Positions 18,001 to 45,245 are shown, numbered from the whole stretch's first letter. The stretch is DNA of 63,016 nucleotides, filler included, from Lenisia limosa (GCA_001655205.1; 9 parts of 9 records of this genome joined end to end with filler, not necessarily neighbours in it); one strand, 5' to 3'. Notes: generated by a model not told the origin, from the letters alone. Numbers and translations are program-made.

Positions 18001-18721
18001 AGAAGGAGGCACAGCGAATCCGTGAGGAGGAAGAGAAACTCCAGCGTGAAACTGAAGCTATCCATGAGGAAAGACAGCAGCTGATGAAGAAGTCACTGAA
18101 ACTTCAGAGTGGTGGCGGCGGCGGCAAGACCAACGAGGAGTGGATGGAGTTGTTAAAGGAGTCCCCGTTGTTCGGACGGCTTGAAGCACTAGAAGGACGC
18201 CTGACTTCTGCCATTACCGTCTCGACGCTTACGCCGAAAATTAAGGAGGCTCTCGAGGCTATTCAGACCGCTTCAGCTCAAGCGCCTTCGTCTAAAGCCG
18301 CTGCCTCTTCTGATGACACTGGTAGGCCGTTAGAGCTTCACTTTGGTTCAAATTCTTAATAAATCTGACCGTCTCTTTTGGACCGAAATGAAGGCCTCTC
18401 CGCCATGTAATCTACCTAGAAGTAACAAATAGTCCAGGTTGTACCTGACCGAAGCCGTGTATTTTTTTATATTCCATCTAACCCCTAGGACTGACCTTTA
18501 CTTGTTTTGTTGTGTTTCGCAAATGTTTGGCCAACAGAGTTGATTTGGGTTTTTTATTTTGTTTCACAAAAGTTTCAAATTTTACTCCCCCTCCCCCCCT
18601 GCAGCCGAAGAAAAGATAGACCTGGACCCTCGAGAACATGAGTTCAGCGTAGGAGGCCCTCTCAAGACTCTGAGTGTGGACGATCTCTCCCCCATGGAAT
18701 GTGTTGTAGCTCGTTTCGGCC
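88..18721 (+). CDS. Giant cysteine-rich repeat (GCC2/GCC3, ephrin-receptor-like) single-pass membrane protein with long cytoplasmic coiled coil; multi-exon, partial at both ends
   Basis: Dozens of C-x2-C-P-x-G-x-Y-C repeats occur in the small 5' exons (e.g. 88-154, 291-363, 1715-2007, 2259-2410, 4753-5168) and in a very long exon (5509-18321) that contains the 4105-aa ORF. One hydrophobic helix (WTLVAALISAVFVLATGVILGL, about 11448-11514) is followed by E/K/R/A-rich coiled coil. Splice phases match where checked (2007/2259, 5168/5509, 18321/18605). The last visible exon (AEEKIDLDP...DLSPMECVVARFG) is cut by the scaffold end. N gaps at 17706-17718 and 17950-17958 break the frame artificially. 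Confidence 0.9.
3612..3769 (+). repeat. Shared intron 3'-end module (family C; possible introner)
   Basis: CCTGAGCTT..TTGTTATCAACCCTTGTGTG..CCAACAGAGTTGATTTTGGGCTT..TCATAAATT..TTTAC(C)n. Homologous tracts end at acceptors near 2138-2258, 18531-18604 and 46575-46683, and on the minus strand at about 22736-22825 and 50683-50885. Confidence 0.7.
3997..4083 (+). repeat. Triplicated ~26-bp unit (TTCGCCTCTTCTTTTTAACTGTGT) at an intron 3' end
   Basis: Three tandem copies lie immediately upstream of the acceptor TTGTAG at about 4083. Confidence 0.8.
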
Positions 18722-24800: not shown

Positions 24801-27800
24801 AAACAAAATAAAGAAGTATATGACAGAAGCCGTCTACACCATATATATTAAAAGACAAACAATTAAATTGTTACACGTGTATACTGATCATGAAATTCTG
24901 TTAGTGATCAAAATCAAATTTGTATTTTCTTGTACTCAAAAATATTAGCACGCTCACCTAAAGAGAGAACCATCAGTGACATTGCCACCCAAAGGTATGA
25001 GCTAAATGGTCACATTTCACACCAAGTTCGATGTTGTTAAAATATACGCTTTCGTAGGGTATTAGAGCAAATCTCTTGAAAACCAGTCAAGTCATACCAA
25101 TGTTAGAGAGAATGTATTGCTGAAATATTATATACCCGTTCCTGAAAAAAAATTAGAGGGTGTAACGATTAGGAAGTAAATTCACAATATGTAGGATGGA
25201 GAAAAAAGTACCCCTACTCACCCCCAAAGCCAGATATAATATCACTTAGTATGTATATCATATGAGATAGTATATATTACGTACAAATCTGGCATCATGA
25301 ATAAGCAATGCCTTGAGTAGATCTTCACTATTATTTACAAAAGAGTGCTGAAATATTGATAAATAACTAGGGTTTAACAAGAATAGTCTTTTTTGGAACC
25401 GAAAGTGAAGCTCTGGTTTGAGACAGCTGTAAACAAGACAATCATACCTGATTGACAAGTCATTAAGTCTGAAATAAAACACCCAGATCGTCTTAATAAG
25501 CAGGTACCTAAAATGATAAAACAAAAGGTATGAGTTGCCTTTCCATGTTGAAGAAGATGTCATTACCCCCACCCTCAATTAACCATCTTTTTGGTTCTAT
25601 CCCCTCAACTGCCACGTTAATCATATCATGATATCGTTTCTTTCCCATCAAAGCCATTAACTCTAGTCCCCCTCCCCCCATATATTGAAGCACTGACGTT
25701 CAAGTTCAAGTCCCCGCTCCCCCTACTTGGCATCAAAATAAGACTCGGGTCGAGCGAAAGGGTCCCTACTTCGGGGGTCGCTTTCATACAATCTGAAAGG
25801 AGGTGAGAGTAACTCAGGACAGTTTTAGATTTTTGGAAAAATTTTCACACCAATTTTTGGATCATATTCGTACGGAATATTACTATCATTTTCCATACAT
25901 CCCGCAGATTTGAGAGCAAAAAAACACATTCAAAACCCAGGCCATTTCCATGTTAAATTAAAATATTTCCTGTATGACAATATCTTTTAGTAGAGGTCTA
26001 CAAAATTGACCTCGGAGAGAATACAACTTACACAAGAGAAATCAAGAGGCTAAAGGGGATAAACACTAAGAGCACCAGCGCTGATGACCCTGTGTAATTA
26101 GTGGGGCAATATATATATATATTTTAGAACTGCGGGGCAAATATGTACATACATTATGAAGGAAAGCTTACATATCCGTATCGAGAAATTCAGATATTTT
26201 TTGGAACAATAGAAACGTTATCCTTGATAATAACAACACAACACACCATCTTGACTTTCAAATACACCCAATTCAAACATTTATTCAACTTACCAGAATA
26301 AATGAGGTTTCCTGCTGACACACACGAATCGGAACGGTCAATATAGTCATAGACAGAGGATTTGGGGTTTGAACACGACAAAAACGTTGTCAAAATCTAG
26401 AAAATGGTTAGGGTAGTATGAGCTACAGGCAAACTAAGAGTTTAATAAGTGGTATGTAACCCATTCTTGTATTGAAATACAAGCTTTGTTGGTGGTGGTA
26501 ACAGTGAAACTTAAAATCTATCAATTTTTAAATGATTTGACACTTTCTCCCACTGTTAGAATCGGAATGTAAAATGATGTCACCATAGCAGACGCGAGGA
26601 TTCGAACTGCACGCACAACCCAAATTGGTGTTGATGAATTGGTCTGTAAATGGAGATAAAAAAGGCAAAATAATGAAACAAAACAGCATAAAAAAAAATA
26701 CATTGACAAGAAACCCAGGCTACTCGCCCCAACAGCACCGCACCTCATCACTCCAGAGTAAAAAATGCAAAATTAATGAAACAGAAACACTCCAAAATCA
26801 ACTCTATTAGCTAGAAATACAAGAGTTTTGAAAACACTCCACCCACCCCATGTTGACTCACAACAATGGTATAACTCATAATGAGCACCAGTACTATGAA
26901 GGCCAGGGTTGTTGCGTAGAGAATCTTCCAAATGCTAAGGGAGCATAAGAACCGGAAATTTATTATTTACAGTATGCAGGAATGTCATTTTGACCAACAC
27001 AAAGGAAAATGATAGTTAACACAAAGTGAAATAAAAGATCACATGATCTATAGTACAATAATAGTGTGACACATAGTTTACACAAGGAAGTACTAAAAGT
27101 GATACTATTTGGCGAACTACAAATGATGTTCATTTTACCAAGCTAAAACGCCTTTAATTCTCTCCCCACCCAGGAAATCGCCCCCTCCACCCTTACAGGA
27201 AATCGAACGTCAGAACACCAAGTGGAGACTGAAAGACGTTGAAAAATTCAGCAATAAGTTTCTCTTCTGCCAGCACACCAGCAGTTAAGATGAAGGATAG
27301 CGACTCTAGGAACTGAATAAGATATAATAAGGGAACTATATAATGAATGATTGAGATAGAGATATTGCAAATACTGGGCACTCCAAATGTGTTTGGGCCT
27401 GAGGTACGGATGCTAAGATATTGGAAGAATGAGCAAAACGTTGTATAAATCTCAAACTTTTTTCAAACATTATACCTCCCCTCCACCCCCCCCCCTCTCT
27501 CCTACGGAAATAGTCGATAAACACAGCAGCTGCCTGGAGAATTGGAGACCTTCCTTGACCTATAGGATTTATTGGGGACCCTGCATTTAATATTTTGAAT
27601 TCATTAATTAAACCATTTTGAAAGTGAAGCGGTTGAAAGGAGTGTATTTTCCAATAAAAAAAATGTCCCTCTTCAAATTGAAAGTAATTTCTCACAATAT
27701 TACGGAGTTTGGTCGGCCCCTCATATAAAGAATGCACATACACCGAGAAGTCCTGAAACGGAGATAGACCATAACATTTGGTCAATCGTGTCAGGACTTA

Positions 27801-28320
27801 TCACGCTTTGTTTATGTATGTGTTTACAAGTGTCTACATTATGAGTAGACTGAATGAGGATATGAGTATGTATGAAAGACTTTCTGATTATTAACCCTCT
27901 ATAGACTCATTTGATACGAACGCAACTAATGAACGCCCCGAAATTTCGAAATAATAACTATTATATAGAAATGACAGTTTTCGAGGAGGGATATGATCAA
28001 TATTTAGCCAACTTAAGAGGGTTGATTTAATTAATAAAAAGGAGCTATCTAAGTGTCTCGCGAATCCAACAATCCTTGGCCAGGGAATCCATAAGAATTC
28101 GCTATCCGAACACAAACATGGTTCCAGCAAGGACAAAACGAAGACGTATTACAGTAACACCTCCAATAACCACCCTTAGTAAATCCAACCAACCAGTTAC
28201 GAGAGTGTACAGGAACTGGAAGAGGTGCTCCTCAGTGCTGGACCTGACATGTTGATCAAGATTGCTTGCCCATGCCGACTGGGTCTGAGTATATGGAACG
28301 GTTGAGGCTCGTACTGACAT
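18822..28320 (-). CDS. TmcB/TmcC ('tiny macrocysts')-like multi-pass membrane protein: N-terminal TM region plus TPR-like segment; 3' part truncated by the scaffold end
   Basis: ATG at 28320. Minus-strand exons read, in order: MSVRAS...EEHLFQFLYTL; PLLYLIQFLESLSFIL; IWKILYATTLAFIVLVLIMSYTIV|TNSSTPIWVVRAVRILASAMVTSFYIPILT; LYESDPRSRDPFARPESYFDAK|YLLIKTIWVFYF; FFSEEDVEIRTRFIY; AMQKAENIFKAGLIQFPHSVII; MSPGLLPRFIIFTR; LVDFMDFRRTFADAKKNHQAALAMTKSFWQ; SYRRLLRSFPQSKSILRHYASFLQTVVSD. This motif order matches my recollection of the TmcB/TmcC PAS-domain membrane protein family. The PAS domain itself is not seen. Confidence 0.75.
22826..22902. mobile_element. MITE family B copy
   Basis: CAGAGACGGGATAAGTCTTGACCGATTTTCCTTGGGAAATC...GGCCAAGACTTATCCTGGTCAC, flanked by TA, within a Tmc-like gene intron. 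Confidence 0.7.
23228..23300 (+). mobile_element. Dispersed repeat / probable MITE (family A)
   Basis: GCTTCACTTCGGTCCGAAAAAGACCGGTAAAATATCGATAGTTTTCGAG. Related copies are at about 576-642 (hairpin form), 1121-1180, 21983-22040, 35195-35250, 46423-46470, 61501-61570 and 62683-62720, and in reverse at about 18372-18396, 20230-20250, 25390-25415, 41580-41605 and 51015-51082. All are intronic or intergenic. Confidence 0.65.
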
Positions 28321-29069
28321 GCTTAAAGCTGTTATATTAGTGTTAATTAGCTTAAGGGGAGAAGGAGGTGGGCAGAAGTGGAGTGTACGGAATGTGCGGA
28401 AAGATTAGAAGCCATCAAGACACTATTACCGAGAATCGTCTCAGATTTGTTTATATAACCAAAATTTGCAACATCTCCAACGCTTACAAGTTCGTTAAAC
28501 GACCTATTCAATCTGTCCAGCAACTCCTTTGTGCTGAATTCCGATCAAAGTGCGCTAGCTGCTGCTTTCTCACCAAGAACCACGCAGCACAACCACCAAG
28601 AGGAACAGATGGGCCGGAATGTGGTCTTGGGTCTTGGTCTTGTCTTGGGTTTATAAAATCCGAGCCACGGGTTGTGAATTTCTCATCTACTCATCCCTCA
28701 TACGCCACCTCGCGCAAACTCCAGTTATAAGGCCAAATGATGCCCAGTGCGTACCGGGAAATCCCTAGCCCTCGCGGTCTGTCTATTTCAAGTCTATTTG
28801 TCTACGTGTCATTTTTTTTATATAAAACATTGAGTATTTGAGTTTTCTTGTTTTCAGTTTCAGTTTTCAGTCCCTTACAATACATACTTTGAGATGAGAA
28901 TCTGGTCGAATCAGGCCTTTATTATCATTTCTTATGATGTATATATATTATATATCAAATATGATATACATTACATTAAAATATCAAAAAGACAAGAAAC
29001 AAAGAAACTGAAACTCAGAAAGAAAGAAAACAAAGAATAAATTGTGATAAAGTAAAAGGGGAATAGTAG

Positions 29070-32000
29070 TCAGCTGACAATCATCCGTGTTATGACCCCC
29101 AAAAGGCCAGCAGCCAAAAGGGAAGCAATTCCCTGTATAACTTCAAATGACACCTCACGGCCAAGAACCCTGAAAGTTGAGCTAAAGGCTAAACTTAGTT
29201 CATAATCTGATTGAAAAAGACTGTATACCTACAATTGCCTGTTGCATTATACCCCTTTGAATGATATTTGTAGAATGGGAGATGGTGACAATTACCAACG
29301 GCTTGTAGAGCAAGAAAAGGGGTGAACATGCTCATTGAAAGCTCGGAATCCCAAAAAAAGATGACCACTTCCATATGGCAACTTTCGAGTCAAAATTATA
29401 AACACAGATAATACGAGGGGTCACCTTGAGTGTATCAGAATTATTGAAACTAATTATTCTCCATTGAAAATGAGAGTTCAGACATGTGAAAATCATTCAG
29501 AATTGATATGATCAAGATTCTCTCAGCGATTCCCTCGCTCACTCAATTCGAGTATCGGATGTGGTAATCAGCCCTATGAGATCCTCCAAAAAATAGTGGC
29601 CCTCGCGATTGAACACTATTGACAGAGCAGTATTTGGGTACTACTTAGTCATTTTTGAGGTCAACACATGCATGAGAAAGGGTGTGTCATATTGAGCACA
29701 ATTAAATAGTATCATATATCTCCTTGCCGTAATGTGTTAAGGGCTTCCCTCCTTTCCAAAAAAGACCAGTAAAATCTATATTTTTAACAAACTCCGTCTT
29801 TTCTGGGACCATAGGGACGCTATAGTTACTAATCAGACATTATAAAATGGACAAATCAAACAACAAAGGATATGAAGCTCTGAAAAGCGTTGTAACAATT
29901 ACAGGAGATCGACATTTGGCCTGATATATCAATTTTTCACCTCTCAATTCCCCTAAAATCCCAACTACCGAAGAGAGTAGTTGGTCTAGAGTCAAGCCTT
30001 GGTGCCTGCTCATGAACCTGAGGTTCCTCTTTTCCAGTTCAAGAGTAGATCCTATCACCTACAAGGGGGTAAAGTTAAACAAGTATGTGATTTTGAACAA
30101 TAAAAGTAAATGTTTAGTAGTATATTTATATATCATATGATAGCTTTGTATTTACAAGAGAAAGTGAGATCTTTTTTGAAAACCCCGCTTTATCTTAACA
30201 TGACACATCCATACACACAGATACAACAAATACAATATAAATATCATAAAATAAAGACTTTGATAAGAAATCAATTCAAAATAAAAAATCATATCAGCAA
30301 ACCACCACCTACTCTCCGTGACACAATATCTCTGAGATGCATCTAAACTATTAAAAACAGCGTGGTGAAAAAATATATATAAAGGTTGCAATTATGCAGT
30401 AACACATTTAGCTGTGAAAACTTGATTGAATTACGAGCTTATCTGTTTCATAAAAGACAGAATTTGAACTAAAGTGAAGCAACCTGACACCACCACTCCC
30501 CTTAATAAGATTCCCACTTTTTCTCTGTGAAGAAGTCCGATATGCGATCTCAACTCGGCATTCACTGATGCTGCTGTTCTCAAACTCATAATTAGAATGC
30601 TGAGATGGTGAAAATACTAGGGACAAAGCATTCAGAATGCAAAAAAATGTCAGTAATCTATAGGCCTCATCACACACAATAATCCACATATCATTTATTG
30701 GAATATAGATAGAGCAAATTAGAAGGTAATAACTGAACTCACGAGGCAAATACGGCCATTGCTAATCCAAAGAAAATGGTCATATCATTGACTTCGGAGT
30801 AGATTACGATCCGCATTAAAACCAAGGCTGCAAGGAAACTGCAAGGTCAGAATTAGAACTCCGTTAGAAATGTATTCATCAAATACTAGTTTTATTGTGG
30901 AAATATAGCACAAAACATAAAAAGTATCACCACTTACATATTTGTGACAAGGCCAAAGCCCAAAAGCGACGACAGTCGAGCTAGTGCAGGCCTCATGCTG
31001 TCCTGGAAATGAACTCTGATCTTGGACCATGCAATGATCTAAAACAGATTATCTATTGTGAAAATCAAAATAAGTGTTGTGATGGTTGTGATCTGGGCAA
31101 CCCTTCAGTCGAAAAAGTCAAGATATTTATTGATGATTATCGACGTTTTTCGTTCAAAGTTAAGCACTAGTTCTGCTAAGTATAAGAACCTCCTTTCTGA
31201 ATAGATTACCAACACTCTATCGTCGGATTAAAGAGTGAATTGACACAAGTTGGATATTGTTAGTTTGAAAAAATTGTGGAGACAAAATGTATTCGTGAAT
31301 TATATGAATAGATTATTCAATTATTCTATATTACTATGTGGTTGCTCCAAATTGTCGTAAAATTATACTGGTACCATTCACTCTTATTTGAGAAAAGGCG
31401 GTATGCTTACGTTATCTAGGTATTGGAAGTTGAGGTAAGGAACTCCAAAGGCCATCCTTTCGTTGTCGTTATAATTGGAAAGTTGGCTACAATTAATAAA
31501 AAATGCTATTGTCAAGAGGTATTGGATGATTTGTGGGCAACAATAGTTGATATCTATATTTAATTTATTGAGATGAGAAATAAAACAAGATTGCATCTTG
31601 CCAAAATGATATATACCGATATATATACTATATGATATGTTATAATTAGGGTTGCCGGCAACTATTAAAATACATGTACATGGAACAAAAATTTACAAAC
31701 TCTAAGATTCATGACAATGTGACTATGTTTACAAACACCTGAGCATGGTTGCTAGTATTTTGTCTATTTTGGTACAATTTTGCATAAGACATTTCTGCAT
31801 TCCAACTGACCAAAAATTGTCAAAATTATACAGAGCTATATGATATATATTACACTAACTGGGATAAGTCTTGACCTATTTTCCTTGGGAAATCAGAGAG
31901 CAAATTGGTCAAGACTTATTCCGGTCACTGTATATATGATATAGCTATATACCGACTGACCTGAAAGCAGTAACCATGAATTGGTAACACATGAGAGAGA

Positions 32001-35000
32001 AAAAGTGTTTTGAAGACACTGCAATGGCAAGGTATACCTCAATTGTAAAAGCTATTCAAACTTTGAGTCCAAAGGCTTGGGGTGTACAAAATGTGTTATC
32101 AGTGTTGCGAGGTAAATCATGGGTAAAATTAAAATTAGGCACTATTGTTCAGTCTATCATTGATGCCTTTCTCACAACTCACAGAATAAACCTTGTATCA
32201 TATGATAATTGTAAGATAAAGCCATCCTACCCATGTGAATGTGAGAAAGCTGTTGAGAATCGTGCATTTCCTGTAAGGTAAAATTGCGAAAATCAATCAG
32301 AGTATGCCAATGCTTTGCTAAATCCCCTCCAAAACCCCGAGCAGCAAACACCCGGGTAAAAACCCGTGGCAGTGTGACTGTTCATCGCAGTGAGCATTGT
32401 ATTTGCATCCATTATATGTCACGGGTACCCAACCATTCAAAAGAAGACGTTTCACTTGTCTCGAGGAACCATATTTGGGGGACAAACGTCAGCAAAAAAG
32501 CTGAGATCAGTCCCAAAATGACACTGTTTCTAAAATGTGTTAGACGGTAAATAATACACAAGTGAAAACGTTGCGAATCAATCGAAGCTGATTTGGTATG
32601 AAAATTGGATCTTTTACTTTGTTCATCAAAACAGCACTTCTATCATTTTGTATTGTTTAACTACAAACGCTCAAACAATACCGCATTTTTAGATGAGCCG
32701 TATTTTCTTACAAACCTTTTGACTCTTCTGAGAAAACGTAATGTTTGACTTTCAAGACAAATCGAAATGTCATATCTAAATCGTCATATGATTATGGGGG
32801 TTGGGTCGATGAGGAATAACCTCAGGGTTAAGGATCATATCATCCTTGATAACACTTGCTATTCCGCATACGCATTGTCAACTGAAATAGACTTGGAGAA
32901 TAAATCCTACACAATCAGAAAAACGAAATAAATTCAAATTGAGTAAGGTGGCAAAATATAGTATAATACTCTATAATTGATATGATATCAATCTCCCACA
33001 ATATCCACACATCCACAAACTTTTAAACTATTGAGGCGTGGCAAATGGTGCAAGCTGGTAGTTCCTGTACTCAACGTTGCCCACGCGGGATACTAGCATA
33101 ATAAGTTCGGAAATAAGAGAAACAACTAACTACTGTGTTTGGCTTAGTTATTACAGTAGAGACTTTACTGTAAAAAATGGATACCTCTCTTGAAATGCAC
33201 CACTTACCGATTTAAGCCATGACCTCTCCATACACGACCCAACAATTCCGGAAGGCACCGCATGGACACACTACTGATGAAAGCGAGAGAGAAGGGGTAT
33301 TATATCATTAAATTGTTCAGGAGAGGGTTCTATCATAAAAAATGAATTATCTCAGCATGATAAGTCGGACCATCTCTACCTCCACAAACAGCAAAAAATA
33401 CGAAGCAGCAAACACCACTAAACCGCTGAAGAAGAGACAAGGTGCTGTGGTCGTGATCTGGATGAAACTGTTGAACCCCCTTGAAGAGCAAATTGCTAAG
33501 GGACTCATCAAAGAACAATAATATTTTGGTTATGAAGTTTTTTGAAGAAGATTTAAGAACTTCGGCTACGAATCTGAATCTTCAGATTTGGTTAAAAACC
33601 AAGCATAACTGTTTAATTGAGGCAACAATTACATCCAAGATCTGAGCAAACCTTTCATTCAACTGGAATATGAAGTATACATGTGTCATCAATACCAAGA
33701 CCCATGACAAAGCATCTAGAGAGATGAGAAGGATATTCAACACAATGCAAAAAACAATTTGAACTAATTGAAAAAAATATACATTATAAAATAGAAACCT
33801 TAGACCTCGGTGTTTTAGCCCCTTTTCTTGAAAATGAAAATTATCCCTTCATTGGTAATTATAAACAGTAAACTGACCGCGATAAGTCCTGACACTGATA
33901 TTGAGCTTTATCTTGAGTCAACCGTGTGAATACTTGTTGTGGTCAGTGTATGTACATGTATATACAAAAAATGATGAAGTTATTATCGTATGCATATATC
34001 ATATCTATAATATATAAATATCATTAGTTTTATTGTCAGCTAAACAATAATCCAGATGTTCTATTTCTTGTTTTGCTCTCAATTAATGTTATTATATATC
34101 ATATGTTAAAACATATAATAACATGTTCCAGGTATATTCTGAACTAACTTATGAGATACTACACACCCTTTTACATTTAAAGAAAAGCCTCCATGATGAA
34201 GAGTTGTTGAACAGATGCGTGGTGATTGAAGTTCGAATTTTTAACACACCTGGAAATAATCAGATCAGGAAACATAAAAACAAAGTATGATTCAACAACT
34301 CCCCTTTCAAAATGCCAATAAAACTCTTGTCCGCCAACAAAATAAGGGAAGGAGATAGGGGAAGAGAAGCCACGTCATCAACGTCATGAAGAAATGGCCT
34401 GATAGGAGATGAGTTGGTATTCTAATTCAGGAACAAGCTCTGATTTTTTTTCAAACAAGAAAAGAAAAATAGTCTGAAGGTTGTGACATCTTTTGTTCAG
34501 AGAAAAATGTGTCAGGCAATAATTCAAGTTGAAAGGAAGTTTAAAAAGAAATAATCAAAGTAACTGGTACATTGTGATACAATTCCATCTAACAAAAGTC
34601 ATTTACTTCATAAGAGCGTTAACCAACTTAGATAAACGTCAACATTCATCTTTTGTCGAAAGAAGCCTGGAGCGAACTCAAACTGGCTCTTCACAACCGA
34701 TTTCATAAACTGCAATATCAAGCATAGGATTTCGATTTCGTCCGAAAATAAACGACCTAATATGACAAAATTTCCAAAACGAAGACTGTTTTTTGGAACC
34801 AAAATTGGTCTACTAATCCCCCAATTATTCGGTGTTTGTTATCACCACACGTAATCTTGCTTTCTCTCCTTTCTCCACTTCCTCTTGTAAATTTGATGTT
34901 TATTAAGAAGATATTGGTTGGATATCCCCCTCCCTACCTTGCTGGTTGTCAAGGTCCGTTCGTGTCTGTGGGGAATAGACAGTCGTCTACGGGACTCTGG

Positions 35001-35072
35001 AGACTCTTCGACAACTCGAATGTCCATTGGTGGTATTTCATCATGGGTGGCCAGAGGACTTCTTTGCATCAT
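29070..35072 (-). CDS. PHTF: PHTF-like seven-transmembrane protein (7TMIC / insect chemoreceptor-related fold); 5' end uncertain
   Basis: Phase-consistent splicing of the 3' exons gives ...AFSQLSNYNDNERMAFGVPYLNFQYLDNIIAWSKIRVHFQDSMRPALARLSSLLGFGLVTNIFLAALVLMRIVIYSEVNDMTIFFGLAMAVFASILIMSLRTAASVNAELRSHIGLLHREKV...FLEDLIGLITTSDTRIDSTFRVLGREVSFEVIQGIASLLAAGLLGVITRMIVS* (TGA 29070-29072). This parallels the PHTF motifs VPxFxL..NIxxWxxxR, LLxEQI and DSPFRLYG...SGVISDLL. Further TM-like exons lie at about 33385-33495, 33630-33715 and 34180-34250. The assignment is at family level only. Confidence 0.65.
31853..31930. mobile_element. Palindromic ~80-bp MITE, Tc1/mariner-like (family B)
   Basis: Consensus TA|CAGTGACCGGGATAAGTCTTGACC...GGTCAAGACTTATCCCGGTCACTG|TA, i.e. 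about 24-bp TIRs with CAGTG-type ends and TA flanks. Other near-full copies are at 22826-22902, 36886-36964 and 62186-62255. Confidence 0.75.
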
Positions 35073-35936
35073 TGCAAGTATGACCCGTTTTAGGCCAGGA
35101 CAGCAGCTTTTTCGCTTTTACTGTGGAGTCAGAATTGTAGATTATCACCTTATTACAAAGTGATGGTCTGTAGGGCTGGTTACATTCTCCTACATAGGAC
35201 GGTCGGAAAAAGCCAGTAAAATATCGATGTTTTTTGAGGTTTTATCAAGAAAATCTGTCATATCTGGAGATGCTACATTATTATGCGAATGTCAGACAAG
35301 AGTGGATAGTATTGATTCAAGCAACCGTTGGAGATTACCGCACAAACAAATCATCAAAAAAGGGTAGCGCATGAGGTGCTTTAAAAAACAAGAAGACGTA
35401 TCACCCAGCCTACCAAAGTAAGAATAATCTCACAGTGTTGGTGATAGCAGAGCTAGCCTAACCTGCCACATAACTTGATACAATTAAAGTTAATTATTAG
35501 GAGACAATACTCGTCTCTCTTGTATTTCAAGCCTGGTCTGAGTTCATTAGTTATCAGAGTCAGAGGGCGGTGATCAATTGAAAACAGGACAAAGGTGGGT
35601 TCGAGAATACTCCTCCTATATTCAATTCACTGGTCAAATTTACATGGTTAAATAGAGGATAAAGGGGATGGCTGGCTGCTGCCTACACTTGTTCAAACCA
35701 AAGAGTATCAATTCACGGATTTTATCTTGAACACTGTTGTTGCTCCTTCAGCTCCTTTTCATTTCCTTTCCTGCACATATTGACAAATTTTACTAGTATA
35801 TTCAGGAATTGAGGAGTTTACTCCGGTAGTGTTTTAAGATTTGGAGATCTTGCATTTCTCTTCCCGTTTGTCAATCTCAATCTGTGTTCTTGAACAGGGC
35901 CTTAACGCACTGGGCACCATACAACATTCCCCGTTA

Positions 35937-38900
35937 ATGGGCCTGTTGTACCTCTTGGTATGGCTGAGTATCTTGCAGATCTGCCGTGCTTACGACCAAT
36001 CTATTCCGTATGTTNNNNNNNNNNNNNNNNNNNNNNNNNNNNNNNNNNNNNNNNNNNNNNNNNNNNNNNNNNNNNNNNNNNNNNNNNNNNNNNNNNNNNN
36101 NNNNNNNNNNNNNNNNNNNNNNNNNNNNNNNNNNNNNNNNNNNNNNNNNNNNNNNNNNNNNNNNNCTCCACATGGAGCATATCATCGTACACTGACTCTG
36201 GGATAATTGCTGAAATGAATGGGTAGGATGAAGCTCAAAATCACTGGAAATACTTATCGCGGTCTGTATATACCTGTATATCGCCTTACTATGACGTATC
36301 CTTCTTCGATATTTGCCTTTTTTATGTACTCCATAAGTTTCTTGCGTCAATCTGTGATCCCCCCCCCCCCCNNNNNNNNNNNNNNNNNNNNNNNNNNNNN
36401 NNNNNNNNNNNNNNNNNNNNNNNNNNNNNNNNNNNNNNNNNNNNNNNNNNNNNNNNNNNNNNNNNNNNNNNNNNNNNNNNNNNNNNNNNNNNNNNNNNNN
36501 NNNNNNNNNNNNNNNNNNNNNNNNNNNNNNNNNNNNNNNNNNNNNNNNNNNNNNNNNNNNNNNNNNNNNNNNNNNNNNNNNNNNTTCAGTTATCGTCCAA
36601 TTTACCCCCCCCCCCAGGCTAATAGCTGAGCCTCTTGACGCACCCGACTTTGAAGCCTTTGTGGGATGGGGTTAGATTTGTTCTGTATTATTATAACTGC
36701 ATTTTGGTTACCAAAAGACGGATGCAATCGTGTCAATAATTTTGTTATTATTTGAGTTTGAAGTGGTGCACTATTCAACCATACACAAATATGGTATATA
36801 TCCTAGAAATATCGAATTATACACTTGTCTTTTGTTAGGGCTGAAAGTGAAGACTGTTTACTATATTATATCAGATATCGATGTAAAGTGACCGGATAAG
36901 TCTTGACCGATTTACTATGTGATTTCTCAAGGAACACGGTCAAGACTTATCCCCGGTCACAATGTACAGATTAAAAATCATACAGTCAACGTCTTATGTT
37001 TCCTTGAAATATGACTACGATTACTTTTCTTGCATTTGCCTATTGAATCCTCTCGAGTTGTTTTTTTTTCTCCTTAAAATTCCCCCCTGATACCATTGCC
37101 GCAGAATGTGCATGGAGGCGTTTTCAAGTTATCAGACCTCACAGGAGCAGGGCATGTGGTTGGCGGAGGGTGTGGGGAATGCAATGAGAAATAAAAAATA
37201 AGGAAGTATCTGGCCGACGCCACATCATCATGCTTATAAGAGATATTGGATTATGGTATAATATTAATTCACCCAATCATTTGCCTTTCAATTCTGTGCA
37301 CACAGCTTTCTGCGTGTCTCCCCAGCATACATGTAGTGTAGATAGGGCTTCCTTTCAGCCCAAAGAAGACTGGGTTTCTCGATAATCCACGATAATATGG
37401 TCAGACCCGTCGACCCCAGCACATTGTATTTATCTATCTTACTGTACTATGTCAAAAAGAGAGAAAAACAAGGTAGTACCTCTCAGAAGCCGTTACAGAC
37501 AGTGGATTATTGATTATTGCATAAATAATAACCTTACAGGTTGTTTTGGATCTTTTCAGCACGTTATGCCCCCCATGCAGAAAACTTGCGAAATTTGTCC
37601 TTAAGTGAGTTGGGGTTCAGCTTAGAAAATATAGAAGTATTGTTTTTTTTTCAGAATTTATCAAAATGTGATCAGGGAATAATAAATAAGTATGTCTAAC
37701 TTTTTTGACGCCTTCACTCTGACAAATTAGACTGGTACGATAATCTGATTCATATTTTTGGCAAAATTGTTTTGAAACCGTGTAGTATTTTATCTTTTTA
37801 TCTTTTTTCTTTCTTTGCTTCATATATTCCCTGAATCACATCCTCAGACCCCTTCATGACGTTTTGACAGCGCAATCAGTTGAGGATGTCGACGTAGGTG
37901 ATGGTTTGTTTGTGGCAGTTATTGTTGTTGTAAAGAGTCTACTGAGAAACTCGCGTTTTGTACACATTAGAGCTTGACCTACTGTTCCAATAAATACTGA
38001 ATCCTAGATAAATCCTCGATAAATATCGAAAGTGGTGCTATTTTATAAATATGTATTATGTGATGATAACTTTATAGGAGCTGTTCATTCAGGACAAATG
38101 AGAATTGTCGTTATTTACAATTTGATCCATTATTTGGAATTGAATTAAAGCTCTGAAGCTGTTGATTTTATCTCATATCACCTTATCCATACTAGATTAA
38201 ACTGAACTTGGCCCCATGCAATTTATTGAGAAATGAATTGTGATTTTTAGTGCGGGATATAGTATATAACCGGAACTATGTTTCTAGATCTTTTATTTCG
38301 AATGATGTCATACTTCGCAGCTTTTGTCCGTGACAGTCAATCCTCATGACACCTTCCCAATCCTGCGGTCATTCATTTCCACTGAAGGCTACCAATGGCC
38401 ACATTGCACCGCACCGGAGTACAATGTATGCTAGGCTTTCCCTCGCAAAATATTTTCTTCCTCGATTATCCTCACATAATATGGATTTTTCCCTTAAACA
38501 AAAAAAAATACGAAGTGTATTTAATGCTTCTTTGGATTCCTTAAAAAGTGAAATTTTGGAAAATCGTCGAATAATATATTTTTTGCTTTTGGATTAAAGT
38601 GCCTCCCGCTTGAGTAGATACACCCATGTCTGGGTCAGCTTGCTAATCAGAGTTTTCTAACTGAGTTAACACCTTCTAGCTTGGCATGATGTACAACGCC
38701 TATTACATTCCAAGTATTTCGTTTATCGGACCTGACGGGAAGGTATGTGGGGATTGTCTTTATGTTATGACCCTTTTTTTAATGAACAGATCCATGCCCG
38801 ATGGGGAGGTGGAGACGGACCTATTTCACCCGACATTATGCTGGCTACCATTGCTTCGATTATTGACAGGTTTGTTCGGATAAATCTAATAAACAGCTGC

Positions 38901-39646
38901 CAAATGCACATATTTGCTTTAATCATCTAGTGATAGAGTATGATCTTAATATATTATCATATCAATTTTCGATATCTAGGAAATCATTTAAATTGATATC
39001 GATATATCGATATATACTTAGTATATCATTCTAAATCCATATCGATATATATACTAGTATATCAGATATTTAAAGGGACAGTGGTAGGTCTTGACTGAAG
39101 GAAAATGGTCATGTCTTGCCAGTATCATTTAAAATAATATCCAAGCTTCAATGTAATTCACCCATACATCTATCAAACCTTTGAGAACAGAGCCTATCAT
39201 ATGTCTGAAAAGTTTATTGTGTAACTGCCCTCTTACTTTCATCATATCTACATGTGTATGGATACGTTTCAGGGTAGATGGAGTGGAGCTTGCCAGTGAA
39301 AATGCAGACATTAACGAGCAAGAAAATGATCCAAGTATGTGGTGCTCGTGTGACACTTTTTAATCTGTTGTGAAACTTGGAATATCCAACTGCATGTGTA
39401 CACTGCCTTAACCAAAAGAGAACTGTTGCACATTTTGGATAATCAATTTATTTTACCCACTTCTACCTTCCTCCACACTAAACATCTATTTTGACCTCAT
39501 CCCCCCCTCCTTCAGGTTCCAATGAAGACCCTGAGGATGGAGTATGTAACCCAGATGATGCAGTGACGGGGTGTGGTGATCCCAATCAAGGCAATCAAGA
39601 CCCTGAAAAGCCTGGACCGGAAGCGCGAAGTATCGCTGAACTTCCT
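35937..39646 (+). CDS. Signal-peptide-bearing TlpA/ResA-type thioredoxin (redoxin) domain with CPPC active site; probably the N-terminal half of a fusion with the downstream CcdA domain
   Basis: The spliced product is MGLLYLLVWLSILQICRA-YDQSIP|STWSISSYTDSGIIAEMNG|LIAEPLDAPDFEAF|NVHGGVFKLSDLTGAGH|VVLDLFSTLCPPCRKLAKFVLK|PLHDVLTAQSVEDVD|LLSVTVNPHDTFPILRSFISTEGYQWPHCTAPEYN|LGMMYNAYYIPSISFIGPDGK|IHARWGGG..., followed by an acidic linker. CPPC is at 37567-37578. The checked junctions are GT-AG and phase-compatible (one acceptor lies in an N gap). Confidence 0.85.
36886..36964. mobile_element. MITE family B copy
   Basis: GTGACCGGATAAGTCTTGACCG...CGGTCAAGACTTATCCCCGGTCAC in an intron of the thioredoxin gene. 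Confidence 0.7.
37186..37282. repeat. Dispersed ~95-bp intronic repeat (family D)
   Basis: AAATAAAAAATAAGGAAGTATCTGGCCGAC...AAGAGATATTGGATTATGGTATAATATTAATTCACCCAATCAT is the near reverse complement of 47385-47482 (PUS7 intron). A diverged partial copy is near 60290-60350. Confidence 0.7.
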
Positions 39647-39680
39647 GTTTGAGGATCATATGGAGTTCATCATATTTTAG

Positions 39681-42600
39681 TTTCAAAGAAATAGAGCCAC
39701 AATCACTGTTTTGAAGTCTGCAGTATTCTTCAGATTAATCGGATACCTTGTTGTTGAGCAGTAATAACTGTAATAATATGTGCTTTTTATATTGTCGATA
39801 ACTTTATTGTAGGAAGCTGTGCGGGATACTGCTGCTGCTGCTCTATTGGCTGAACAAAACGCTCGAATACAGAAGCTTAATGCCTTCAATGTTTGAGGAT
39901 TGCTTTGGAAATGACTGTTTAACGTTTCTTTCTCTTTTTCTTCACTGTTTTTTGCACTTGGTTCCCCATGTTTGTTGATTTTTGAAACGAGATTTTCATC
40001 TGGAACATTTATTGCCTTTGCCTATTTTCGCTACTTTTACAACATTAAATGAAGGTGTGTCTTAGTTCGAAATACCTGACTTCATTGGCATTGTTAGCAG
40101 CTGGAGGCTTTGCTTTCTTCCTGACATTGTAACAAAGCTAGAATGGTGCAATGCTATGCATGGTCAAGATATCTATTTATTCAGTCACAATGTGATCTGT
40201 AGAATGTAAAATATCTAGTGCGGGAACATGGCTAAGAGAAACGTGGTGCGAAAAGTCAGATACAATAGATTGGGGTCGGTGGCAGTCAAGCAAGTTGGCC
40301 ATGGCGTTAGATGTGGTACTGCACTCTTTGCGAAGTCCGCCTTGAACCTTCCTTGTTTTGGCTGGGTCGTATCTTCACGGCTGCCGTTGTTAATACCTGA
40401 ACTGTTAGTTACAGGTAAACATAAATTATTCTTTGAAAATGTTTTTCAAGTTGGACAAATACGAGAGAGAAAAAAACCGGGCCAACAAACTTGCAAGCCC
40501 GTTGGCCACCATTCCTTCCAGTACAGCCTTATAAATGTCAAGAAAGCAGGAGATCTTAAGGTAGTCGGGTCGGGTGGATCGCCTTGAGTGTGGGTAATGC
40601 TTGGTCCGGCTAGGATTTGCATTCTTGGCACATTGTCTGAATGAGGTCGTAAGTGATTTTGCTCCCTCACGACATCAATACACCCCAGCATAGTGGAGGT
40701 AGCGAAGTTCCCTCCATTGGCACCAGCGCATATAGAACACCAGTCTTTTCTTCACTTTCTTCGTGATCATTTTCTTCATCTGATTACTTAAATTTGCGAA
40801 ATAGTCATCTCTCGAAACACAAAAGCCACAGACAACCAGTTTTTTTTTTGCCTTTCAGGTTTACCTTCCAGTTGGCTCGATTTCTTCCCAAAGCTCTTTT
40901 TGCAATTCTGACTGGTAAGTTTATGTCAGTATTACATGATCTACATAAAATACGTTACCTGAGTTGCCATACTAACTTATCATCATGTTTCATGTATTTT
41001 GCAAATCTACCGTTCCTTATCTAATGTCCAGGGTCATACTCCTTTTTTTCACCATGTGCCTTTCCTCTTCTTTCCGGCTACGTCTCGCTCCACCTCTCAT
41101 CAAAAGAAGGAAAGTAGGGGGAGAGTAGTGCCAAAAGCCTGAAGGTTTTAATTAAATTAAACATTTACTTTTCTCCCACTAGAACACCTGTTATCTGTAG
41201 TAATTCATTCACATCCATTCAAACCCACCCCTACACCCTGCCAGTAGGGCTGGTTTTATTTATTCATTTTTTTATTTTGCTTTTTTTCGCAGTTACCCCC
41301 CCCCCNNNNNNNNNNNNNNNNNNNNNNNNNNNNNNNNNNNNNNNNNNNNNNNNNNNNNNNNNNNNNNNNNNNAAGTCTTGTACTCCTCTCTGTGATGTCT
41401 ACTCCGATAGCCCATATAATGGCGTCATTTTTGTCAAATTACGCCGACCTTATGAGTGCTTTTGTAAGACTTACTGGATAGTTTTTAGTATTACAAGAGC
41501 TCCATTGCCAAATCTAATGATAGACTGTTTTTTTGTTTTTGTTTTTTGAAATATCCTGGATCCATTTTGATAATACCATATTTTTTGGAACCGAAAATGA
41601 AGCTCTATTTTTGTATTAGGTGATTGTATAATCAATGGTTTCTCAACAGGCTGGGTCTTTATTTCTCTTGAATTTGTCGTTTTTGGTATTTTTCGTTTTA
41701 TGTGCGTATTTATCATTTTAGGTACTTATTATTATGGCGCTCTTGGTCATATTGGACATCGACGTTATGGACTATTTATCAGCGGTTCCGTCTCTGAGGC
41801 TTTTCACGGCTATCAAAAATTGGACCGATAAAAAGACTGGTACCAATGTGAGGGGAAGTATATTCCTATGGTAGAATATTTACCTTTAGACAAAGAAATA
41901 CTTACCCCTTTTTAAAACAGTATTAGTTCATAACTTTAATGCATCTTTTAGTTATCAGACCCAACTCAGACATCAACGAAGGTCAAGGCCTTTGCATATG
42001 GTCTCGGATATGGCTTTGCTTCTTCAGGATGTGTATGACGGGGGTTGGTTTGTGTTCTTATTTCATTCACAGAGCTCCCTCATTGATTTGGGAACTAAAC
42101 TTTTGTCAAGCGATCAATAACAAAAACAATAACTCAATTTTTTTCCCCTCAACATTTTGAAAACAAAAATCAGAGCTAATCATATCACTTTTTGGTTCAC
42201 TTTCACCTGTAGTTTCAACATCTCAACGTTATTAGTGTCTTGTGGTAACCTCTCATCAATATAGAATCTTCCGCTTTTCCTCTCTGTTCAAGCATCAACC
42301 CTCTCCGAGCCACCTGTATGGGCAGTTGCGCTCATATTACTCTACAGTCTATCTGCTTCAGTATTGATGGGTAGGGATCAACAGAATTTTGGAAGGTGAA
42401 TCACCGTTTGTTATTTTAACATTATTATGTTATACTATTGAGATGGTTTGATGGAAATGTCTTTGGAATCAGAAACAGTACTCTTCAAAGTTGACCATTT
42501 TAGTTATTTTCACTGCTCTTGCTTCTTCATGGGCCTCAATACTTGAAAAAGTGTTCAGAGTTCCGCCAAAATGGATGCGAATACTCACTGGTGGGAGGAG

Positions 42601-42741
42601 TGCGTACTTACTTTGATTCAAGAGCCAGCTACTCAGCAAGAAGTTTTCAGTCATACCTCTTTTGATATTTTAGGCATGGTAATGCTTGGTATTGGAATAT
42701 GGTTGATTGTGAAGGCTAAGTCGAAGTTGTTTGGAACCTAA
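39681..42741 (+). CDS. ccdA: CcdA / DsbD-family transmembrane electron transporter (cytochrome c biogenesis CcdA-like), spliced
   Basis: Exons give ...KALFAILTG|SYSFFSPCAFPLLSGYVSLHL (Cys 41055-41057) ... KAFAYGLGYGFASSGC (Cys 42030-42032)|NLPLFLSVQAST...VALILLYSLSASVLM|VIFTALASSWASILEKVFRVPPKWMRILTG|MVMLGIGIWLIVKAKSKLFGT* (TAA 42739-42741). Both redox cysteines (SPC and GC) and the terminal 'G..l..G.wl' helix of CcdA are present. Additional hydrophobic exons precede it (39681-39760, 39813-39890, 40066-40128). Confidence 0.85.
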
Positions 42742-44418
42742 TACGTGTGTAATTAATTATGGGAGTTTTGGAGGAAAATTGCTTATAAACATTTTAATTA
42801 ATGTGCTGAATGAACCTGTTTTGTGGTTTTTTCGAATGTTTCAATGCATTTTTCTTTTCATGGTAAAAATTCCTACACTGAAGTCTGGAGTTTTGGTGAA
42901 TAACTCTTTTGGTTGACCTTCATAGTGCACTGGGGTCCACAATTTTCGCCCATTACACGACAATTTACTTTGCTGATCCCTAGTTTTCAAATATTTGCTT
43001 CAATGTCAGAGGTTCTGGATAAAAACGAGAGCCAACAGGAACATAGCATAATAAATACATTCAATCTTAAACTATTGACAAAAACACACATAAATAAATA
43101 AAATAATAAAATTAACTTATCCCAAACGTCCGGTCTTTATGCGCTGAATCATAAACGGGAGGAGGGGATGAAACAAACGAATTGCCTTGAAAAAGCAAAA
43201 CTTTCATACTCGGTGGTGTTTTCTACAAATGATATTTCTAATAATAGCATAATACATGTAAATTTCATAGAGAAAACTACATTCCACAAACCGTATTCTA
43301 AATTTGAAACAGAATCATCAAGAAGAAGGGCAAATCTTTTGGGGTCTTTGTACATTCGGCTCAATTCTAAGTTACGCGGGTCTTTCTGATATATTAGGGA
43401 TTGTTTGAACTACTCACTAAAAAAAAAACAACAACCTAACATACTCATTATCATCATTTCATACACCCATCATAATCATAAACAATACTGCTTAATGGAA
43501 ATAAATAAGCTATTTGTTATTTGAAAATAGCAAGAAATGGATGAAACCTGCCATTGTCAATTCAAAGCCCAAAAAAGAGAGTCACCGAAAAAGAAATGGG
43601 GTGAAAAGGCGTGGTGTCGTGTTATTCCAGATTTTTATCTATGTATACGTCTCAAATTGGAAAGTGACATCTGTCCTAATTCCATATTGCTCTGACTCGT
43701 TGAGGCAAAGTGCCCCTATTTTCCGCCAAGCCGGCCTTGAAGTTAAAAATGCTTACACGGTCCAGATGTTGCTTCAAACTTATGTGACGTCAACAACTGC
43801 TGAATTTACCCTGCATAGAATTTGAGTAAGCATAGAATTGGGTACGAGAATAGCTTTTGGCTGTGAGTGCTGGTGTCACACTACCGCTGACAGAGTTGCC
43901 CCATCAGCTCCCGTCATCTAAAATGCAGATACATGTACGAACAGCTTCAATTTGCCCGCATTGTCAGCATTGTCAATGCAAAATTATCCCATTCAAGTTA
44001 CCCCAGATCTCCCTCCTCCAAAAGATCTGCAAAGAGGGCTGGAACTGATGAACGCTTACATAAAGCTTGCAAATGTGTTATGATTATCCATCTGAATCAG
44101 TAAAATAATTGTCTTATTAACAATGAAATATGACAGACGCAATACAAGTGTCGTATCTGCTTCTTTGATTGAACTATGTTGTCGTATATTTTCAATAAGA
44201 TTGACGCGATCATAACATGTAAATCGATTTATGAGGAGAGGGTTCGTCATTTATTTAAAGTGTTTCTTTGAATTTTTTTCATCAACACGTTGAAAATCGG
44301 AATCAACTTTATGCAGCACAGCTCTAATGCAAAGATATGGGTATAGAGGGTTAGGGAAAAAGAAAAAAATATGATGAGAGCAGGTGCATAAAAAGAGAGA
44401 TAATATTCGACTATTACT

Positions 44419-44834
44419 CAGCAATCCTCCTACAAATTGAACTGGTGAAACATCCGCACCATGTAGCTGAAGATATTGATAGGTTTCTAGATCGCCAATG
44501 TAAAGCGCATCGTAGAGCCACCAATCTTCCTAATAATAAGCGGGTTGACTACTCTAATGTTGCTATAGAAAACGATAAAAAAACAGCCAAGAGTATTCGT
44601 TTTCATTGAAATTATGATCAAAAAAGTTAACTCTCAATACATCTTTGATGAGAATAACATAGCAAAAAACAATGATAATTATCATTACAATTTGGGAGAA
44701 TAAGTAAGGTTGCAAGTCATACTCACCTTGTTTCTTGAACAACTTGGGTCAAATCCGCAATCTTGGCAGTTTTCCATCAAGAAATGGACCATCGACGAGT
44801 CGTGATCCAAAATGGCTGTCTTCATTGGGTGGAC
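44419..44834 (-). CDS. Exons of a probable ankyrin-repeat-like protein (fragment)
   Basis: Two GT-AG bounded exons read VHPMKTAILDHDSSMVHFLMENCQDCGFDPSCSRNK and EDWWLYDALYIGDLETYQYLQLHGADVSP, resembling ankyrin helices. The rest of the gene could not be resolved. Confidence 0.35.
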
Positions 44835-45245
44835 CTGTGTTTGAATTAATCATTATAACAGCATTTCCAAGAATCAAATCATAAAAAAATGAAATTACAT
44901 TCCATTTCAGTAAAACACTGATAACTATTATACTAGTATAGGTGGGGGGACATGACCGTGTCCACTTTTTTTTTATTTTCTTCAAAAAAACACTAATTCA
45001 ATAAAAAATGTTGCGAAGGGGAAAGCNNNNNNNNNNNNNNNNNNNNNNNNNNNNNNNNNNNNNNNNNNNNTTAATTAATTAANNNNNNNNNNNNNNNNNN
45101 NNNNNNNNNNNNNNNNNNNNNNNNNNTCATCAACATCACCACCATCATCAATATCATCAACATCACCACCATCATCAATATCATCATCACCACCACCAAC
45201 CATCACAATCATCACTTTCAACCTGACCATGCATAACTGGTGTAG

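Follow-up and report, generated by a model that had tools for sequence, protein, structure and literature searches.

Introduction

Can a single eukaryotic gene encode both a thioredoxin-like domain and the membrane transporter that would keep this domain reduced on the far side of a membrane? The question was raised by positions 35937-42741 of a 63,016-nucleotide stretch of DNA from Lenisia limosa (GCA_001655205.1), hereafter the window, which consists of nine parts of nine genome records joined end to end with filler. An initial annotation of the window had proposed here a signal peptide, a TlpA-like thioredoxin, an acidic linker and a prokaryote-type CcdA domain within one spliced gene. In CcdA and DsbD, two membrane cysteines alternate in access and so relay electrons from a cytoplasmic thioredoxin to an extracytoplasmic thioredoxin-like acceptor. 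The analysis reported below revealed that the thioredoxin-like and CcdA halves are one expressed, spliced gene in one frame. Probably this is a nuclear gene descended from a prokaryotic fusion, with a product made up of a signal peptide or anchor, a CPPC thioredoxin domain, an acidic linker and a six-helix CcdA domain, which would act as an electron relay.

Gene Structure and Transcript Evidence

The gene model was assembled by enumerating all GT/GC-AG pairs that preserve an open frame, from the frames with thioredoxin-like and CcdA-like peptides. A single open reading frame (ORF) of 507 codons plus stop was obtained on the plus strand (35937-42741), divided into 19 exons by 18 introns, all GT-AG. 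The region has about 37% G+C and, being AT-rich and devoid of long ORFs, has the appearance of intron-rich eukaryotic DNA. The ORF, together with the RNA joint described below, bears out the proposal of a single spliced gene, the signal peptide being putative.

Contigs from two runs of one study, polyA RNA (X1) and DNA (X2), were mapped onto 36810-42800. RNA coverage was low (2-4) and 3'-biased, with a depth of 31 at the last exon. The junction between the two halves was reached by RNA contig record 3 (406 nt), for which the pieces 39813-39890, 41031-41113 and 41373-41463 were listed; the unlisted pieces (42, 42, 40, and 30 nt) were placed by bin depths, the bins being cross-checked and the total coming to 406 nt. 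This placed 42 nt from bin 40810-41009 at 40872-40914, and 30 nt from bin 41610-41809 at 41722-41751. Of the last 40 nt, bin 39410-39609 accounted for 3 and bin 39610-39809 for 37 (depths 0.04 and 0.54), a split that fits solely the block 39607-39646, and 39646 is therefore spliced to 39813. The junctions in record 3 were 39646/39813, 39890/40872, 40914/41032, 41113/gap, and 41463/41722, the first two in frame, and the introns deduced from it were 39647-39812 (166 nt) and 39891-40871. Further junctions were found in record 1 (38425/38680), record 5 (42032/42265 and 42370/42504), and record 6 (42590/42674). A candidate exon at 41637-41685 with a 36-nt intron was rejected; 41463 joins 41722 directly, and the RNA agrees.

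The proposed fusion was thus borne out in RNA: the contig spans 39646/39813 in frame into CcdA, and the TGA at 39650, directly past the exon 10 donor, is intronic. No Met codon occurs in exons 9-13, and CcdA therefore has no start of its own there. The domains of the initial annotation stood as well, with LCPPC at 37567-37578, SPC(289)AFP at 41055-41057 and SSGC(421)NLP at 42030-42032 all in one frame, but the splice path that it had named between them had to be replaced. It had called introns at 39647-39680 (34 nt), 39761-39812, 39891-40065, and 40129-40858, where the RNA has the two introns deduced from record 3; the mini-exons 39681-39760 and 40066-40128, source of its extra transmembrane (TM) helices, were not in the observed RNA, and its exon 40859-40914 became 40872-40914.

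A different reading of the same transcripts would be two products, with most transcripts retaining or terminating in intron 39647-39812, so that a secreted thioredoxin ends at TGA 39650 and CcdA is made separately or rarely joined. The stop codon directly past the donor and the junction RNA depth of only about 3 are in line with this, as are unspliced contigs in the same library: records 2 and 4 (39043-39233 and 41553-41751; depth 2) were colinear with intron sequence, which implies that the polyA library includes pre-mRNA or some genomic DNA, and that presence in RNA alone is no proof of an exon. However, 39646 is joined to 39813 in frame in the one RNA contig that extends this far, the lack of Met in exons 9-13 leaves CcdA without its own start, and prokaryotic homologues are fused in the same order, which makes separate products quite unlikely.

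At the 5' end, no in-frame ATG was found between the upstream stop at 35835 and position 35937. The phase-2 donor of intron 1 and the acceptor at 36617 give cc/g, a Pro codon, followed by LIAEPLDAPDF; with this first junction, predicted from phase, both gaps in intron 1 (Table 1) would be intronic if exon 1 ends at the 36008 donor. The gap 41306-41372 interrupts exon 14. Between 41113 and 41373, record 3 has 42 unplaced letters, none of them in 41210-41305, and the phase of exon 14 closes, as 2 carried + 42 + 91 = 135 nt, or 45 codons. Poly-C runs (36362-36371, 36606-36615, and 41296-41305) flank the assembly gaps in or near the gene, which suggests homopolymer-related assembly breaks rather than large missing inserts.

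Table 1. Coordinates of the exons and other features of the thioredoxin-CcdA gene in the window, with their content and basis
Feature	Coordinates	Strand	Content	Basis
Exon 1	35937..36007	+	ATG and hydrophobic N-terminus MGLLYLLVWLSILQICRA/YDQSI; putative signal peptide = residues 1-19	Sequence and phase logic
Intron 1	36008..36617	+	GTATGT donor at 36008; contains gaps 36015-36165 and 36372-36584	
Exon 2	36618..36660	+	Start of thioredoxin fold, LIAEPLDAPDFEAF	Aligned to archaeal xAPDFxV
Exon 3	37105..37158	+	NVHGGVFKLSDLTGAGHV	GT-AG path and archaeal alignment
Exon 4	37540..37604	+	VVLDLFSTLCPPCRKLAKFVLK; C66-P-P-C69 at 37567-37578	Aligned to archaeal VVLLDFMSxTCxPC
Exon 5	37848..37893	+		Sole in-frame GT-AG path
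Exon 6	38321..38425	+	LLSVTVNPHDT...WPHC...EYN	RNA record 1 over 38328-38425, then 57 nt of exon 7
Exon 7	38680..38742	+	YIPS, conserved cis-proline context	RNA record 1 and GT-AG path
Exon 8	38790..38869	+	End of thioredoxin fold; preceded by 47-nt intron	GT-AG path
Exon 9	39273..39334	+	Start of acidic linker	GT-AG path
Exon 10	39516..39646	+	Acidic linker with C207 and C216; ends on codon boundary	RNA record 3 over 39607-39646
Exon 11	39813..39890	+	EAVRDTAAAALLAEQNARIQKLNAFN, helix-like segment ahead of TM1	RNA record 3
Exon 12	40872..40914	+	First half of CcdA TM1, LARFLPKALFAILT	42-43 nt of RNA record 3, bin depth 0.61
Exon 13	41032..41113	+	GSYSFFSPCAFPLLSGYVSLHLSSKEG; redox Cys289 at 41055-41057	RNA piece 41031-41113
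Exon 14	41306..41463	+	Acceptor and first 42 nt inside gap 41306-41372; visible part 41373-41463 = TM2, SLVLLSVMSTPIAHIMASFLSNYADLMSAF	
Exon 15	41722..41847	+	TM3 and lysine-rich loop	Sole in-frame junction from 41463; 30 nt of RNA record 3
Exon 16	41952..42032	+	...KAFAYGLGYGFASSGC; redox Cys421 at 42030-42032	RNA record 5 (71 nt, 41962-42032 by depth), joined to 42265
Exon 17	42265..42370	+	NLPLFLSV..., remainder of TM4, then TM5	RNA record 5, piece 42265-42369
Exon 18	42504..42590	+		RNA records 5 and 6; joint 42589/42673, GT..AG, depth 31
Exon 19	42674..42741	+	TM6 and stop TAA 42739-42741	RNA record 6
3' untranslated region	extends beyond 42800	+	AATAAA at 43050, 43093, and 43105	

Protein Layout and Redox Residues

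The predicted protein begins with hydrophobic residues 1-19, followed by a thioredoxin fold (about residues 25-175), an acidic linker (176-240), a helix-like segment (241-266) and the CcdA domain (267-507). The Kyte-Doolittle value over residues 1-19 was 1.55, with C-R-A ahead of the putative signal-peptide cut. Within the thioredoxin domain, C66-P-P-C69 aligned with C102/C105, which are nearly invariant in the archaeal family described below, and Pro139 (YIPS) with the invariant P170 of the family alignment, identifying it as the cis-proline; the 27-residue exon 4 alone matched Pfam Thioredoxin with E = 0.03. The linker contained 18 Asp/Glu vs 3 Lys/Arg in 65 residues.

In the membrane domain, SPC289AFP (helix 1) and GC421NLP (helix 4) aligned with family residues C232/P231/P235 and C389/P392, respectively. 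TM2, TM3, TM5, and TM6 were clear by hydropathy; TM1 and TM4, which bear the Cys and Pro residues, fell under the cut-off, and the archaeal alignment covered all six. Lys and Arg clustered in CcdA loops 3 and 5, while loops 2 and 4 had none. The protein ended 9 residues past the sixth helix, with the thioredoxin domain N-terminal and no immunoglobulin (Ig)-like domain.

The linker also carried two cysteines, C207 and C216 (C-NPDDAVTG-C), nine residues apart and not present in archaeal homologues, which could pair in a small disulfide loop or serve as a further redox relay.

Archaeal Redoxin-CcdA Fusions as Closest Known Relatives

A degenerate DNA pattern for FSPCAFPLLxGY matched 33 loci among 185,579 prokaryotic species genomes (one per species), of which 12 belonged to Heimdallarchaeota, 10 to Chloroflexota and 7 to Halobacteria, the rest being Thermoplasmatota, Bathyarchaeia and unclassified archaea. 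No cyanobacterium was among them, with a pattern that was derived from the window protein itself. Many motif-bearing archaeal ORFs encoded 440-490 residues and had the motif at about residue 210, and the Heimdallarchaeota loci carried the fusion. The best blastp match was P0006 (locus L024), an archaeal homologue of the Poseidoniales/Marine Group II-like type that was 26% identical over 494 columns (E = 4e-28); this single alignment (model residues 31-497, homologue 65-465) spanned both domains in the same order. Identity to prokaryotic homologues was 25-35%.

A profile of 29 archaeal fusions from Heimdallarchaeota, Poseidoniales-like archaea and Thermoplasmatota, built without the window sequence, scored the model at 164.8 bits, made up of 68 for thioredoxin (residues 29-156) and 96 for CcdA, while the best of 1000 shuffled controls reached 7.2 bits. 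Of the 50 family positions that are invariant or nearly so, the window protein retained 35, among them the four redox cysteines, the cis-proline and the cysteine-flanking membrane prolines; in PLLPGY, Ser replaced the otherwise invariant Pro. The initial assignment of the CcdA as prokaryotic in type, in a heavily intronised gene, is supported.

The archaeal proteins resemble the window protein from end to end, with an N-terminal hydrophobic segment, a TlpA/ResA-like domain and a predicted six-helix CcdA in the same order, and with the shared motifs APDF, VVxLDxxSxxCxPC, FFSPCAFPLLxGY, and YGxxYxxAsxGCxxP. They differ in having a TM anchor at the position of its hydrophobic N-terminus, whereas the window copy has a cleavable-looking signal peptide there, as well as 18 introns, about 60 extra residues in the acidic linker, a shorter first cytosolic loop and a very long branch. 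Such end-to-end likeness implies that the fusion was inherited from prokaryotes and not made in the eukaryote. The idea that it was a eukaryotic invention is no longer tenable, as many archaeal proteins and some bacterial ones have the anchor-redoxin-CcdA architecture.

In Pfam, the archaeal homologues matched AhpC-TSA, Redoxin and Thioredoxin_8 (AhpC-TSA at 1e-14 to 7e-19), and DsbD_TM at 2e-11 to 7e-5, some of them below the 27.1-bit cut-off. The family profile matched ResA (6e-21), as well as DsbE, StoA, TlpA, and pneumococcal Etrx, and the CcdA structure 5vkv (7.5e-6) over TM1 only. An AlphaFold2 (AF2) model of P0006 (predicted local distance difference test score, pLDDT, 76) was all-helical over 214-470 and superposed on ResA with a template modelling score (TM-score) of 0.86 by target length. 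A database search with a mixed profile gave 389 family members, and the best 120 of the 389 were all archaeal (Heimdallarchaeota, Poseidoniales, Thermoplasmatota, Euryarchaeota and an unclassified archaeon), with names such as 'redoxin domain-containing protein' or 'cytochrome c-type biogenesis protein'. All of these archaeal proteins would outscore even the model, at rank 121, so eukaryotic relatives would not be visible in the best 120. Fusions of redoxin with DsbD_TM were found in the ESM Atlas in Archaea, Bacillota and Pseudomonadota, and in none of the eukaryote-labelled clusters. On haloarchaeal plasmids, unfused neighbours were annotated as CcdA and TlpA.

Other searches returned little. 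Single window exons, as short queries, gave weak Thioredoxin and DsbD_TM leads only in Pfam, the PDB and the Atlas, and a Foldseek search of the archaeal homologue model against AlphaFold DB clusters and Swiss-Prot gave thioredoxin-domain and generic matches only. The motif exon had no match in plasmids (tblastn), and its 30 residues retrieved from 1.84 billion protein representatives two spurious repeat-protein matches (a P450-fragment repeat and fibronectin type II), which suggests that the window protein, the RNA-contig fragment and any very close orthologue are not among these representatives. An exact 50-mer and a degenerate FSPCAFPLL[S/T..]GY pattern gave 0 matches in JGI metagenome contigs. 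No eukaryotic relative was seen in the motif-exon, mixed-profile, JGI metagenome, ESM Atlas and Foldseek searches, for which the query was other than the full spliced protein.

Two further observations concern the archaeal family. Heimdallarchaeota have a second paralogue (L027:1401-2501, L028:5917-7026, L012, and L006) of about 367 residues with a reduced thioredoxin part; these short proteins formed their own long branch beside the full-length fusions (support 100/100, length 1.57). Additionally, the fusion L023, labelled Bathyarchaeia, grouped tightly with L021 of Heimdallarchaeota (100/100), either through a binning error or through recent inter-phylum archaeal transfer.

Origin of the Gene

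Of the 39 sequences in the tree, that of the window protein had by far the longest branch (2.55); it fell beside a Poseidoniales-like clade, with unstarred support of 80/88. Approximately unbiased (AU) tests did not reject its forced union with Heimdallarchaeota (p = 0.31), Chloroflexota (p = 0.27) or Halobacteria (p = 0.43), and the sampling was biased by the motif used for fetching the loci. No placement is excluded by the three tests, and on the donor lineage the tree is without signal. Collinearity with the archaeal fusions points to descent from a prokaryotic fusion gene. Most simply, this gene would have arrived by lateral transfer, then gained introns and exchanged its anchor for a signal peptide. 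It would then offer a clean example of the uptake of a prokaryotic, probably archaeal, membrane gene with two domains, broken by 18 introns.

Vertical descent from an Asgard archaeal ancestor of eukaryotes, instead of a later lateral transfer, would be compatible with the 12 of 33 motif loci that belong to Heimdallarchaeota and carry the same fusion, and with the AU test that allows union with this clade (p = 0.31). But the free tree places the window protein by the Poseidoniales-like clade (80/88), the unions with Chloroflexota and Halobacteria were equally unrejected, and no other eukaryotic copy was seen in the searches made; such a relic is very improbable. That the relatives detected are all prokaryotic might also raise the suspicion of prokaryotic contamination or an assembly chimera. 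Against this, the coding sequence has 18 GT-AG introns, polyA-RNA contigs are spliced exactly at them, and identity to any prokaryote is just 25-35%. Moreover, a 6.7-kb DNA contig covers 37302-42800 at the single-copy depth of 33.6 (continuous over 37302-41252 and 41373-42800). Contamination is refuted by the spliced RNA and has virtually no probability.

Topology, Electron Flow and Location

Several points weigh against the reading of this gene as a fused electron relay. The 39646/39813 joint rests on depth arithmetic and is not an entry in the joints table, and at an RNA depth of about 3 there may be minor isoforms, e.g., one that stops at TGA 39650 and yields thioredoxin alone. The RNA mapping began at 36810, downstream of exon 1, and both this exon and its junction are predictions from sequence and phase. 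A further exon could sit in the 5' gaps, with position 36222 as the end of an in-frame candidate (STWSISSYTDSGIIAEMN); the share of the sequence words of 36166-36371 present in the RNA run was 0.00, which, at the low 5' coverage, is weak evidence against this candidate. Fifteen residues of the model are not readable. The membrane domain is a divergent CcdA, single exons of which have no Pfam match, and some archaeal homologues also lie below the DsbD_TM cut-off. Finally, as far as found, the archaeal family itself has no known activity, partner or location.

The N-terminus of bacterial CcdA is extracytoplasmic. The concentration of Lys and Arg in loops 3 and 5, with none in loops 2 and 4, fits an N-terminus on the outside also in the window protein, with the thioredoxin domain lumenal or external; as the loop charges are consistent with this orientation, the extra helices once placed between the two domains are not needed. 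In such a topology, cytosolic thioredoxin would reduce the CcdA cysteine pair, the electrons would move on from CcdA to its tethered CPPC domain, on the side facing away from the cytosol, and this domain would in turn reduce disulfides or oxidised Cys/Met repair enzymes in the lumen of the secretory pathway or at the cell surface. By analogy, the substrates could include non-native disulfides, peroxiredoxin-like enzymes and methionine sulfoxide reductases, and delivery of reductant to the lumen of the endoplasmic reticulum (ER) by the window protein would be a reasonable inference.

The same layout might instead serve a complex plastid, as a fused equivalent of thylakoid CCDA and HCF164/CCS5, with the signal peptide as the first half of a bipartite signal and cytochrome f/c6 maturation as its job. 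Many complex-plastid presequences have an aromatic residue directly past the cut, and so does the window protein at its predicted site (CRA/Y); the in-frame stretch that ends at 36222 is rich in Ser and Thr and could be part of a hidden exon; and the thioredoxin domain of the family is nearest to ResA, a reductase of cytochrome c maturation. Plastid CcdA and a membrane-anchored TlpA-like thioredoxin are, moreover, known partners (PMC5526843, PMC3842002). However, about 12 residues lie between the predicted cut and APDF, which leaves no room for a transit peptide in the model, although an exon in a 5' gap is possible. The whole protein, including the thioredoxin domain, is collinear with the archaeal fusions, and in the 185,579 genomes the FSPCAFPLLxGY loci, found with a pattern taken from the window protein, were only archaeal and from Chloroflexota, with no cyanobacterium. 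Plastid targeting is therefore unlikely; if true, the gene would be a Rosetta-stone fusion of the CCDA and HCF164 partners, which would be less surprising and still informative.

For the spliced relay of archaeal type, the most far-reaching proposal is that it works by itself as a DsbD-like conduit in the ER, elsewhere in the secretory pathway or in the plasma membrane, with no plastid involved and with archaeal acquisition, which would make it the first identified eukaryotic carrier of cytosolic thioredoxin electrons into the secretory lumen. This proposal is put forward tentatively and the odds are rather against it. If it is true, the conduit would provide a working model for the missing membrane step of the ER reductive pathway. 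The window protein would also be a candidate for tagging, knockout and assay.

Surroundings of the Locus

No recognisable gene was found in 18822-35900 and 42800-45026, where ten ORFs of at least 100 residues had no Pfam family, and Rfam gave no match in 18822-45026. The sign of the A+T skew changed near 34.8 kb, which may reflect a minus-strand gene upstream of the fusion gene. The initial annotation had linked the system to a giant surface protein at 88-18721; that sequence lies on another of the joined pieces, and the link falls away.

A very high-copy interspersed repeat occupied 36810-37409 (intron 2 and exon 3 into intron 3), where many DNA contigs broke or jumped. DNA word depth was 43,961 in 37210-37409 and 1,000-3,000 in 36810-37209, compared to 33.6 in the single-copy flanks. 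Beside it in intron 2 was a 23-nt inverted repeat (36894-36952; 87% complementary, 13 nt apart), which may be the end of a small foldback element or one like a miniature inverted-repeat transposable element (MITE).

Comparison with Characterized Systems

Escherichia coli DsbD, with eight helices, begins with an immunoglobulin-like domain and ends with a thioredoxin domain. The window protein shares with it the DsbD_TM superfamily and the principle that an attached thioredoxin-fold domain receives electrons from membrane cysteines, but it differs in having six predicted helices and a single, N-terminal thioredoxin domain, without the Ig-like domain. In Bacillus subtilis ResA and CcdA, likewise, a membrane CcdA reduces an extracytoplasmic, membrane-tethered thioredoxin-like protein, and ResA was close to the archaeal family in both profile (6e-21) and model (TM-score of 0.86 for P0006). 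The active site of ResA is CEPC, vs CPPC in the window protein. The Bacillus proteins are, however, separate, and their substrate, apocytochrome c, is not expected in a eukaryotic secretory compartment.

In Streptococcus pneumoniae, the extracellular, membrane-tethered, TlpA-like thioredoxins Etrx1 and Etrx2 are reduced by CcdA1 and CcdA2 and feed a surface methionine sulfoxide reductase. The family thioredoxin domain matched their structures (PDB 2yp6, 4hqz, and 4hqs) with E of about 1e-15 to 1e-16 and TM-scores of about 0.8. Although the Etrx proteins are separate lipoproteins and bacterial, the Etrx-CcdA system offers a plausible model, by analogy, for a non-cytochrome role of the window protein.

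The only described eukaryotic CcdA system is that of plastids, in which electrons pass from stromal thioredoxin through CCDA to a lumenal TlpA-like thioredoxin, HCF164/CCS5 (PMC5526843, PMC3842002). This trans-membrane thiol-reducing pathway of thylakoids uses two polypeptides of cyanobacterial ancestry with transit peptides, whereas the window protein is a single chain, has motifs of archaeal type and shows no transit peptide.

In the mammalian ER, cytosolic thioredoxin reductase and thioredoxin reduce lumenal proteins through an unidentified membrane protein, presumed to act by DsbD-like disulfide exchange (PMC7197872, PMC5331760, PMC5751730). The window protein has the parts that such a conduit needs, its placement in the ER being hypothetical, as is a mammalian homologue. 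A spliced signal-peptide thioredoxin-CcdA gene would show that a bacterial-style solution to the ER reductant problem exists in at least one eukaryote.

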